From: Styela clava
Taxonomy: Eukaryota
Assembly: GCF_964204865.1 (NCBI RefSeq)
Contig: NC_135251.1
Location: forward strand, 12,152,001-12,216,000
DNA: 64,000 nucleotides
Direction of reading: 5' to 3'
A program made the position numbers and the translations under genes. Shown here one piece after another: positions 10,780-62,968 of the stretch. Within the stretch, counting starts at the first letter, position 1; every line of letters starts with the position of its first letter. Below the pieces are notes generated by a model. It worked only from the letters and a program-made list of their open reading frames with translations, made no database searches and was not told the DNA's origin.

Positions 10780-12647
10780 ATGAAAATCTTGCTGCATTTG
10801 GCCTGCATTTTCTTACTCGTGCAGTTTGGACATGGCGAGGTATTATCGATTAAGTTTATCATACACTTTATGGGAAAAGTGCTTTAAAAGATGATTTCAA
10901 TATTAAAATTAATTCATATTTTACATTAAGTTCGCTTTTAGAGGTAGGATATATAGCCTCAACAACCTTTATAGACTTTTTTTCTTTTTTACCTGATCTT
11001 TCACGAAACAAAATTAAAATTCGATTCGTTATTACCTCGGCATCACTCGCAAAGTGCCAATCATAAGGCTATATACCTGATCAAATATTTCTTATTAAGA
11101 AAAAGAAAATCAATGACTATTCACGAAGAAAAAATAAAATTCGATTCGTTATTATTTCGACATTTTATTTCAATACTCGCAAAGTGCCAATCGTAGGACG
11201 TTATGTCTAATTAAATATTTCCTATAATATCAAATAAAAATAAAATCAATGATTTGCGAAAGAAACCGATGAGGTTATTTCCCCCAATTCTTCAATATTG
11301 GACACACAAATTGTAAATTTACAACCAGTAACAAAACAAAGCATTGCCTCTCCAAATTATCACACCATGGGTAATTATTGTGTACGTGGGACTTGATTAC
11401 AGGTTCGTTATAATATGGTGATAATCGGTTATAATACTCAAAATGTTCTAACCACGTGTCCCTAGATTCAAAACAATGAATAAATTATAAATCATATTTG
11501 TTCAGGGAGGTCGGGAATTCTTCAGCATACTTTCGGAGGGAATCACGGACGCAGCCAAATTATATTTTTCCAGAAATGTGAAGTTGGATGGATCAGGTTT
11601 CAATGTAATAAACGAGGAAGATTTTTACACTCCCATTGGGTTATTCGAGACGCAGTATGGAAAAGATGCGTCGACAGCAGGGTAGGGAATTTTTGGTAAA
11701 AATACCGGTAAAGTGTAGAGTAGGCAAAGATGATGTAAATGTTTTGATGCCAACGATGAATGACACGATATGCGCTTTTTTGTTGGTATGAAATCTCGAT
11801 TTTATCTTATTCAAACGTTCTTTTAACAAGGCCTAACACACAGTTCCATTCGCAAAATAAACGTGGATCAAATGAAAAGTATTTTGTAACACAATTTCGC
11901 AAAACATTCAAAGATTTAAAATTTCAGATGTTTTATTTTTCAAATTTCGATTTGAAACAGAAATTGACTGTTTCTTGCAGCTAAGCGGAATTAATTTTGT
12001 TATACAATCGCTTAGGCTGACACTGAACCAAATTGGCCGCAATGACATGAACGCTGTCATTGGAAAGAAAGAGGGAAGACATACTGACCGTTGTGCTAAA
12101 TTGTTCTTGTTATTGGAGTAGTTAAAAAAGGGGATCAGGCATTGTGGCCGTTGTGCTAAATTGTCCTTTTTGCGATTTTCTCCACAATTAATGTAGCCAT
12201 CGCTTTTAAATTCGATAGAGGCGTCCATAGACGGATTTTTGTTCGCTTCAAATTTTCCTGTTTTTTTTTTTTTAAATCTACGGGAACTTTCAAATCACGT
12301 TTGGTACAAATTCATTATCATATTGCTGAAAATTTGCAGATTTTACTGTGATCCCAGTTGGTATTTACTTTTTGAGCTTGAAGTTTTCAAACATAAAATC
12401 ATTTTTTTCAGCTTCACTGCAGGTCTTTTAGATTTCGAATATTTCGAATCATCGAATTTAACATTCTCTGACGTCACACAACTTGTTGTCGTTGGAGAAT
12501 TTCAAGACGCAAGAAAAAAGTTTTCAGCTTACATAGAAAAGACTGTGGAAGACCGATTAAACGATGACGGTACCGTTTCGGAAGAAAACATTGATGCAGT
12601 ATCACAGATAATTCGTGCGGCATTCCTCTCCCTTTACGACTTTGTTG
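10780..12647 (+). CDS. Gene 1 exons 1-3: signal peptide and shortened VWA7-like N-terminal helical region
   Basis: [20 protein letters not shown] | [21 protein letters not shown]...[15 protein letters not shown] | [11 protein letters not shown]...[13 protein letters not shown]; phases 0, 2, 1 join in frame to the VWA exon. Confidence 0.75.
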
Positions 12648-62600: not shown

Positions 62601-62968
62601 GTTGAGACCTTGTTTCAGAGTTCAAATTGTTAACCAGGAATCGGAAGTTGTTTTATAAATCACTTAAAGTTTGGGAGTCGCGTCAGAAAAAAATATTTGC
62701 AACCCACAGCCCCGCTCGTAACTAATAATGAGTGGTAATTCTAACAATATGATTCATGTAAGTAAAATGCCAAAATTGAGCATTTCTTCATTCAGATGAA
62801 CGGTTTATGTGGAAACTTCAATGGAATTGGAACTGATGATTTTGTTACTTCTTCGGGTCTATCAACCACGGACATCAATGAATTCGGAGACAGTTACAGA
62901 CTCGACACATGCACAGCTTCAACAACAACTACAGCGTTTACTTGCTCTCCCAAATTCGCCGCAAAATG
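46997..62968 (+). CDS. Gene 2 (3'-incomplete): Sib-like/bacterial-adhesin-like head fused to VWD-C8-TIL repeats, over 980 aa within the window
   Basis: Exons 46997-47182,47483-47627,48918-49029,49384-49512,50085-50202,50635-50797,51403-51535,53334-53492,53636-53679,54127-54266,54608-54715,54844-55012,55777-55900,56387-56525,57534-57663,58571-58678,59166-59257,59658-59808,61042-61301,61940-62107,62796-62968. All GT-AG and phase-consistent. Hydrophobic stretch [13 protein letters not shown] near the N-terminus. The start could be the ATG at 47006 instead. The last exon ends at a donor site, so the gene continues past the window. Confidence 0.85.
47905..48020. mobile_element. Truncated copy of the 14556-15015 hAT MITE (one end, opposite orientation)
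   Basis: CAGGGGTAGGCAAACTTTTGTCGTTCGCGGGCCAAAATTAAATGTTGCAAGTCATTGG is close to the reverse complement of about 14955-15015. Confidence 0.75.
52139..53121 (-). mobile_element. Non-autonomous Tc1/mariner derivative with about 300-bp terminal inverted repeats and a broken 5' transposase fragment
   Basis: TA|CGAGGTGTGGCTAAAAAGAAACGAGACTGAC ... GTCAGTCTCGTTTCTTTTTAGCTACACCTCG|TA. Arms about 52139-52437 and 52825-53121 are near-perfect reverse complements. The minus strand encodes [18 protein letters not shown]...[13 protein letters not shown]...[12 protein letters not shown] and [14 protein letters not shown] (mariner HTH and WVPHEL-like linker), with a stop and frameshifts. Confidence 0.92.
54127..59808 (+). 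CDS. Gene 2 exons 10-18: VWD-C8-TIL-TILa unit 1 (GDPH intact)
   Basis: [26 protein letters not shown]; [14 protein letters not shown]; NCQYDM; CDWR; [18 protein letters not shown]. Confidence 0.93.
55060..55445 (-). repeat. Family B copy
   Basis: TTGGACACGTTTAGTGGACATAACGATCG...CGTGTCCATATATTTGGGCGTAGCTCACTTGT matches both ends of 4806-5200 in reverse complement. Confidence 0.65.
55502..55697. repeat. Family A copy
   Basis: GACGCTCCAGAAGTGTGTGTAC...CCTAACCCTATCCTGGTACACACATTACGAGAGAACCC. Confidence 0.8.
58946..59117. mobile_element. Small TIR element (MITE)
   Basis: CATTTGAACCCA...TGGGTTCAAATG inverted pair with an internal CTAACCTAACCC motif. Confidence 0.5.
59824..59955 (-). mobile_element. 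3' fragment of the same SINE
   Basis: GATTTACATATTTATCCTGGGGGAGAGAAAAGCCGATAAG...CATATGGCGAACCACGGCCT is the reverse complement of about 35130-35215. Confidence 0.75.
60761..60989. mobile_element. hAT-type MITE
   Basis: CAGTGGTTTAACC...GGTTAAGAAATGCTG with an identical 8-bp TSD TCCTAAAT on both sides. Confidence 0.8.
61042..62968 (+). CDS. Gene 2 exons 19-21: VWD unit 2 (GNAH instead of GDPH), continues beyond window
   Basis: [26 protein letters not shown]; PSYYMSK|[10 protein letters not shown]. Confidence 0.9.
62332..62714. mobile_element. Decayed TIR element with GGAGTC-like internal repeats
   Basis: CGGGGCTGTG...CACAGCCCCG inverted termini. Confidence 0.45.

Follow-up and report, generated by a model that had tools for sequence, protein, structure and literature searches.

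The locus analysed here raises the question of how two neighbouring genes came to carry similar VWD domains behind N-terminal parts that do not resemble each other. The window, that is, the whole stretch of DNA under analysis, covers 64,000 nucleotides (nt) of the Styela clava genome (G000:C2:12152001-12216000, + strand; G+C 34.6%, no N), and 59 kb downstream of it were added to follow the second gene. An earlier note on this DNA had proposed a family made by exon shuffling at one phase-1 junction, in which different heads sit on a common VWD stalk. Our analysis indicates that the window probably holds two separate, adjacent mosaic genes on the same strand, in which a VWD cassette was copied long ago and the surroundings were exchanged via phase-1 introns. 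Gene 1 (10780-45272) would encode a signal peptide, a hemicentin/VWA7-type VWA domain, a Sushi domain, three VWD-C8-TIL units, an EGF domain, a helix, and WxxW. Gene 2 (from 46997 to beyond the window) would encode a signal peptide, a head of ~450 residues, two VWD-C8-TIL units, and a long helix/EGF run. The predicted products of both are secreted mosaics that belong to the VWD-C8-TIL (FCGBP/zonadhesin/tectorin-like) superfamily. The unit-1/unit-2 block of both genes would derive from one ancestral two-unit cassette by an ancient copy, with flanking modules swapped by recombination in phase-1 introns, and the same modules appear to circulate in at least three other genes. The VWD units are called g1u1, g1u2, and g1u3 in gene 1, and g2u1 and g2u2 in gene 2.

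To confirm the shared exon series, for which the earlier note had given 24 lengths with their phases, a blind search was made for intervals of those lengths lying between AG and GT, with the frame open in the phase that follows from starting at phase 1. All 24 exons were recovered, collinear and on the + strand, with canonical AG acceptors, gt donors, and open frames. In gene 1, exons 1-6 of the series were located at 27201-27340, 27959-28066, 28753-28924, 30268-30385, 31207-31351, and 31524-31653, and exons 7-12 at 32123-32233, 32344-32435, 32872-33013, 33543-33796, 33908-34087, and 35954-36111. The corresponding exons of gene 2 were located at 54127-54266, 54608-54715, 54844-55012, 55777-55900, 56387-56525, and 57534-57663, followed by 58571-58678, 59166-59257, 59658-59808, 61042-61301, 61940-62107, and 62796-62968. 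Both series showed the same intron phases, as derived from the lengths with a phase-1 start. Four exon lengths were equal between the genes (140, 108, 130, and 92 nt), and the others were 3-15 nt apart.

Domains were assigned with Pfam, run exon by exon, and VWD and VWA_4 by profile search of the Styela clava genome. In the latter, VWD (PF00094) was above the cut-off at 27212-27307, 28738-28929, 33554-33799, 54138-54269, and 61053-61301. C8 was matched on the expected exons of both genes (E 2.7e-7, 9.2e-7, and 8.7e-16, the last in g1u3). TIL halves were also found on the expected exons (E 2.2e-5 to 7.5e-3), some of them below the cut-off because the exons split the domain. Unit 1 thus comprised nine exons with VWD, C8, and TIL matches in each gene (27201-33013 and 54127-59808). 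Unit 2, recovered by the exon search and the VWD profile, comprised six exons in gene 1 (33543-38012), while in gene 2 its first three exons lay in the window (61042-62968) and it was completed beyond the window at 64323-66384.

The two units of this cassette corresponded position by position. Identity was 40% between g1u1 and g2u1 and 26-30% in every other unit pair (30% for g1u2 and g2u2). The exons of g1u1 had g2u1 as their best non-self match genome-wide, followed by a locus at C16:13.26 Mb, and g1u1 and g2u1 were reciprocal best matches. For the phylogeny of units that the earlier note had called for, units were modelled from four further loci, and maximum likelihood (ML) trees were built with 10 and 13 VWD units. 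The two trees recovered (g1u1,g2u1) with 82-89% and (g1u2,g2u2) with 73-75% support; in the 13-unit tree the values were 82/86 and 75/75, respectively. Approximately unbiased (AU) tests rejected the grouping of units by gene (p = 0.0008, 0.018, and 0.0017). The position-wise pairs were not rejected (p = 0.49 for g1u2 and g2u2). The proposed descent of the unit-1/unit-2 arrays from one duplicated array was therefore upheld, with position-wise homologues in the tree. Of the motifs cited for the pair, CF.DC and CDWR..FN in unit 1, and PSYYM.K at an exon end and AKW in unit 2, were pair-specific among the 13 units. KVSW was not unit-1-specific, since VSW also occurred in unit-2-type units of other genes.

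Judged by its sequence, the cassette duplication is old, and a simple recent tandem duplication was ruled out by the 30-40% identity. The idea of a common stalk did not hold. Only two units are shared, and the C-terminal parts of the genes differ as completely as the heads. The heads themselves were compared by self-BLASTP at E<1e-4, which found intronic repeats only, in agreement with the claim that they are unrelated. The description of the gene 1 head as VWA plus CCP was likewise borne out, as Pfam matched VWA_4 and Sushi on their exons. Both head/array junctions were phase-1 introns.

The exchange of surroundings was also evident at other loci of the genome. The proposed search for paralogues with other heads at the same phase-1 junction yielded two, at C16:13.26 Mb and at C2:20.03-20.09 Mb. 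The C16 gene (+ strand; G000:C16:13235001-13285000, about 25481-49863 of that stretch) encodes a SUEL lectin, WxxW, and two Sushi domains, then the same u1-u2 cassette via a phase-1 intron. The cassette is followed by over 30 EGF-like exons, near-regular in length (135-138 nt) and uniformly of phase 1-1. At C2:20.03-20.09 Mb (minus strand), a paralogue of the gene 2 head (head 2) was collinear exon by exon, including the Met-and-signal first exon and the short last head exon. There the head is followed by the phase-1 junction, a u1-type VWD, many u3-type units, and an EGF-helix-WxxW tail. A third copy of head 2 was found at C8:11.48 Mb (+ strand; G000:C8:11475001-11495000, about 1478-15420 of that stretch), opening with Met, a signal, and HYEGGSVSW. 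Across a phase-1 junction, this head leads into EGF, then a ZP-C domain (Pfam E 6e-5) and what is probably a membrane anchor, and the gene has no VWD. Similarity of the head exons to those of gene 2 was 31-48% per exon in both the C2 and C8 copies.

Phase-1 borders were therefore found before unit 1 in gene 1, gene 2, the C16 gene, and the C2:20 Mb gene, and after head 2 on C8. The border between units 1 and 2 was also of phase 1 in three genes, and the border before unit-3-type units was of phase 0. One head is found on VWD as well as ZP cores, one tail follows different cores, and WxxW lies in the head of one gene and the tail of another. These loci also help to delimit the two genes. The succession of head, junction, and u1-type VWD at C2:20 Mb is the best evidence that head 2 and the VWD array form one gene, and the Met-signal exon shared among the head-2 paralogues indicates that gene 2 begins at 46997. 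The tail of gene 1 is collinear with the EGF-helix-WxxW end of the C2:20 Mb gene, which indicates that gene 1 ends there. Taken together, the phase-1 junctions and the paralogues with other heads favour a family made by exon shuffling, as had been proposed, without the common stalk and the released head that formed part of the proposal.

Gene 1 opens with an exon at 10780-10839 that contains an ATG and a signal peptide, with an open frame, a hydrophobic stretch, and a gt donor. Two N-terminal exons at ~11506-11681 and ~12412-12647 follow from the exon-chain model and had no Pfam match. VWA_4 (PF25106; hemicentin/VWA7-type VWA) was assigned to the exons at 13083-13271, 13711-13849, 15084-15174, and 15884-16054. 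Three successive exons covered profile positions 1-48, 51-92, and 96-124 (E 2.9e-16, 4.4e-8, and 7.2e-5), and the VWA_4 matches of the genome profile search coincided with the Pfam VWA_4 exons. The exon-chain model placed further head exons approximately at 16907-17024, 18454-18632, 21303-21443, 22118-22166, and 23485-23555, with a weak GBD_Hemicentin match at 16907-17023 (E 0.15). The Sushi/CCP exon at 26678-26855 (PF00084, E 4.1e-7) has a strong acceptor and is followed by the phase-1 intron before the first VWD. Unit 3 (38441-43031) comprised eight exons and showed the exon pattern of the repeated units in the C2:20 Mb gene; it formed a very long, unstable branch in the trees. The tail contained an EGF exon at 43520-43636 (FXa_inhibition/cEGF, E 1.3e-7), a helix exon at 43916-44065, and WxxW at 44784-44937 and 45119-45272 (Mucin2_WxxW, E 9.6e-7). 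It ends at a TGA stop at 45270-45272, and the internal donors are weak. Elsewhere in the genome, at C13:3.80-3.84 Mb, the profile search found at least five VWA_4 (hemicentin/VWA7-type) exon sets clustered on both strands.

Several points weigh against the reading of two mosaic genes with one ancestral cassette. The head models are approximate, as the home-made exon-chain finder behind them was trained on the 24 confirmed exons only. Genome-wide, no VWA_4 locus besides gene 1 adjoins a VWD locus. The unit-2 first exons of both genes matched C1:16.00 Mb and the array at C16:19.7 Mb above each other, which contradicts the pairing (g1u2,g2u2). The tree branches are long, and (g1u2,g2u2) joins two long branches. 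The trees took in just 13 units, and the genome domain scan comprised 84 VWD-matching exon stretches at ~20 loci. The grouping of the u1, u2, and u3 exon-pattern types into clean clades was not upheld (AU p = 0.028 for the u1-type and 0.057 for the u3-type). A weak AG acceptor at 47004 lies in the right phase to continue gene 1 into gene 2. When the 86-aa VWD exon of gene 2 was compared with a representative protein library, none of the 458 matches exceeded 45% identity, so that gene 2's own protein is absent from the representatives, though the collection does include RefSeq proteins of Styela clava; an annotated protein was found there for neither gene. The best database matches of the gene 2 VWD exon were named IgGFc-binding protein-like or zonadhesin, and the best match of a VWD exon was XP_077974758.1 (IgGFc-binding protein-like [Styela clava]).

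The joining of the VWA part and the Sushi-VWD part in a single gene 1 is suggested by two observations, a phase-consistent, same-strand exon chain from the ATG at 10780 to 27201 and the fact that no internal first exon is credible. The alternative is a stand-alone gene for the VWA7-like part (10780 to ~22216 or 23555) and a second gene whose start lies a short way upstream of the Sushi exon (26678). Gene 1 would then lack a VWA head, and the swapped heads would be Sushi and head 2. In its favour, vertebrate VWA7 is a stand-alone protein, and the other VWA_4 loci of the genome do not adjoin VWD loci. An open exon at 22118-22216, a possible terminal alternative to 22118-22166, runs in phase into a stop, and ~3 kb before the Sushi exon hold no convincing exon. 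However, the chain crosses this interval in phase, and the strong acceptor makes the Sushi exon internal. In addition, no convincing signal-peptide first exon was found in 22.2-26.65 kb, where just a low-scoring, AT-rich frame occurs at 22804-22956. We consider the stand-alone VWA gene unlikely.

A second alternative is that the likeness in exon structure is generic and that the two arrays were assembled independently from common unit types. The exon lengths of unit 1 were 140, 108, 172, 118, 145, 130, 111, 92, and 142 nt in gene 1 and 140, 108, 169, 124, 139, 130, 108, 92, and 151 nt in gene 2. The pattern recurred at C16:13.26 Mb (158, 108, 172, 106, 136, 130, 102, 92, and 142 nt) and at C2:20 Mb (137, 108, 166, 121, 157, 130, 114, 96, and 137 nt). 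Unit 2 had 254, 180, 158, 145, 167, and 265 nt in gene 1 and 260, 168, 173, 145, 161, 122, and 198 nt in gene 2. Its general form (~257, ~160, ~170, 145, ~165, and 122 nt) was present at C16:13.26 Mb (257, 156, 170, 142, 164, 122, and 111 nt), C1:16.0 Mb (272, 156, 170, 145, 164, 122, and 111 nt), and C16:19.67 Mb (257, 153, 176, 145, 173, 119, and 129 nt). The u3 pattern was 98, 160, 122, 162, 275, 105, 92, and 139 nt in g1u3 and 98, 154, 122, 165, 296, 123, 96, and 149 nt at C2:20 Mb. The intron pattern, which the earlier note had taken as a mark of this pair, therefore lost that role, as at least four genes share the unit-1 pattern and that of unit 2 is generic, being found in many VWD genes. 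Because they recur at other loci, these patterns are best regarded as old unit-type characters of the family. Independent assembly would also accommodate the unit-2 first exons, whose best matches lie at other loci. It is contradicted by the reciprocal best matches and sister position of g1u1 and g2u1 and by the pair-specific motifs in both units. Furthermore, (g1u2,g2u2) was recovered and not rejected, and the two genes are adjacent. Independent assembly thus appears highly improbable, and descent from one cassette is preferred.

Gene 2 opens with an exon at 46997-47182 that contains an ATG (and a second at 47006), a hydrophobic signal, and HFFGG, with an in-frame stop upstream at 46964. The equivalent first exon of both head-2 paralogues opens with Met, a signal, and H[FY]xGGSxxW. 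Head exons 2-9 (47483-53679) were taken from the exon-chain model and from the collinear similarity to the paralogues. They lie at 47483-47627, 48918-49029, 49384-49512 (NSSP), 50085-50202 (DSDGD), 50635-50797, 51403-51535 (tentative), 53334-53492, and 53636-53679, which gives nine head exons in total. After unit 2, no third VWD was found in the 59 kb downstream of the window, where a long run of phase 1-1 exons with helical segments and EGF follows. Gene 2 is thus a giant helix/EGF gene, of which the VWD block makes up only a small N-terminal section.

The acceptor at 47004 lies two bases before the second ATG of gene 2, and its phase (2) also fits the gene 1 exon at 44784-44937. A single very long gene, with this WxxW exon spliced to 47004 and head 2 internal, would agree with that phase and with parts on the same strand 1.7 kb apart, but it can hardly be credited, given the low acceptor score (3.1, on a scale that admitted acceptor candidates from above 0 to 2 upwards), the terminal WxxW exon that ends in a stop, the same tail at the end of the C2:20 Mb paralogue, the Met and signal peptide in the first exon of all three head-2 copies, and an acceptor position that would equally suit a 5' trans-splice site. 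Spliced-leader trans-splicing is common in ascidians, and the 47004 acceptor could be such a site. We therefore retain two separate genes.

The note had also placed GDPH about 8 residues past the junction, and it was found at residues 8-11 in both first VWDs (27224-27235 and 54150-54161). The motif C-x3-GDPHY and the LCGN cysteine were kept in three of the five units, namely g1u1, g1u2 (GDPH at 33566-33577), and g2u1. Asp, His, and both cysteines of the FCGBP interfragment disulfide are thus conserved in the first VWDs. A Gln 14 residues after the Asp was present in g2u1 only. In g2u2, GNAH stands in place of GDPH, and this unit should be non-cleaving. In g1u3 (38441-40606), the motif is GKIH, no Cys precedes it, and GLGGN stands instead of GLCGN, which looks like a joint loss of the cleavage site and the tethering disulfide.

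FCGBP is cleaved at every GDPH in the endoplasmic reticulum (ER), and one disulfide per VWD holds the fragments together (C472-C611 in VWD1); the protein was not found to be cross-linked covalently to MUC2 (PMC8267560). The cleavage requires Asp and His, and it stabilises the domain (PMC10880436). By analogy with FCGBP, the first VWD of both genes would self-cleave at Asp-Pro in the ER. The head and one beta-strand would then be tethered by a single disulfide, from the Cys five residues before the Asp to the LCGN Cys. Self-cleavage with a disulfide-tethered head is a reasonable inference. The likely effect would be domain stabilisation, and cleavage could also permit redox-dependent dissociation. 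The suggestion that heads are released or cross-linked by autoproteolysis fits poorly with FCGBP, in which the fragments stay disulfide-linked, cleavage stabilises, and cross-linking is not seen (PMC8267560, PMC10880436). Release of the head would need reduction.

The family of head 2 was approached in several ways. Pfam gave no match when the gene 2 head exons were run one by one, and the ESM Atlas yielded no usable match. The head of the C2:20 Mb paralogue showed sub-threshold matches to SIBA-E_N (E 0.18) and Ig_SIBA-E_3rd (E 0.054), in the right order. They scored 12.3 and 14.3 bits, where the cut-offs are 28.1 and 27, and were on the paralogue only, and genome profile searches with PF24907 and PF24910 did not retrieve the head-2 loci. 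The link to Dictyostelium Sib proteins is therefore no more than a lead.

Several repeats were also observed at the locus. A dispersed repeat of ~460 bp lies at window positions 63507-63968, in the intron 3' of the gene 2 exon 62796-62968. It has at least 40 genome copies with 76-91% identity, and a partial second tandem copy begins at the window end. Copies of an interspersed element were found at 1237-1344, 13404-13562, 16655-16756, and 55534-55655 (47-77% at the protein level in one frame), so that this family occurs upstream of gene 1 and in introns of both genes. A further repeat family was found at 4147-4224, 6483-6581, 6849-6970, and 27377-27527, and another repeat pair at 34881-34969 and 41858-41946.

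The products of the two genes are most likely extracellular mucus or matrix components, and the locus names candidates for such components in ascidians. A more far-reaching view, which we regard as quite doubtful, is that ascidians possess a combinatorial kit, with lectin heads, a VWA head, and a Sib-like head of a kind otherwise known from Dictyostelium and bacteria, all on polymer-forming VWD/ZP cores, GDPH-tethered, and shed or exchanged by redox in the feeding mucus net or tunic. If this were true, each head would be mounted via one phase-1 intron and hang on a single disulfide. No new mechanism is involved, since VWD mosaics with varied heads are already established, as are exon shuffling of class 1-1 and disulfide tethering after GDPH cleavage. 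The value of the locus and its three paralogous loci lies in a one-genome, well-resolved example of heads, cores, and tails exchanged at phase-1 introns. It may serve in teaching and in the annotation of the large tunicate set of IgGFc-binding protein-like genes.

Among known systems, FCGBP (IgGFc-binding protein, of human and mouse) resembles the predicted products of both genes in being secreted and in placing its VWD-C8-TIL units behind an N-terminal head that is not VWD. Early in its VWD1 it likewise carries GDPH, and the Cys at position -5 from the Asp pairs with the one in LCGN (PMC8267560). As FCGBP already combines a head with a cleaved VWD1, the mechanism is not new. The N-terminal domain of FCGBP is FCGBP_N / IgGFc_binding (PMC4948705). 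FCGBP_N (PF17517) had no match on any head exon, at exon-level sensitivity, and its sole genome match was on C10. Moreover, FCGBP has 7-13 VWD units compared to three in gene 1 and two in gene 2, its head differs, and it lacks the WxxW and helix/EGF tails. Neither gene is thus regarded as an FCGBP orthologue, because of the missing FCGBP_N and the small number of units. With regard to gel-forming mucins, the gene 1 model is without a long proline-threonine-serine (PTS) region or a C-terminal cystine knot and ends in WxxW, and the only comparable feature in the modelled part of gene 2 is a short T-rich stretch that follows unit 2.

In alpha-tectorin and zonadhesin, NIDO or MAM heads precede the VWD-C8-TIL arrays, and the C-terminal end bears a ZP domain or a transmembrane anchor. 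They share with the present genes the principle of one kind of array behind different heads, and the head-2 paralogue on C8 has EGF and ZP. Unlike in tectorin and zonadhesin, no NIDO or MAM domain was found here. VWA7 and hemicentin are matched by the contiguous VWA_4 over three gene 1 exons and by the weak hemicentin galactose-binding-like match, whereas gene 1, if it is one gene, adds Sushi and VWD units, a combination found in no paralogue. Dictyostelium SibA-E share with head 2 the N-terminal position behind a signal peptide and the order of the Pfam matches in the paralogue; in contrast, no match reached the curated cut-off, and none lay on the exons of gene 2 itself.

The closest parallels are the Styela clava paralogues. 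The C2:20 Mb gene combines the gene 2 head with the gene 1 tail, the C16 gene carries the same cassette behind Sushi, and the C8 gene has the gene 2 head. They differ in unit make-up, with u1 and many u3-type units at C2:20 Mb, u1-u2 with more than 30 EGF exons on C16, and a VWD-free core on C8. The locus exemplifies exon shuffling in the large FCGBP/zonadhesin-like family clearly, but it is an ordinary example.

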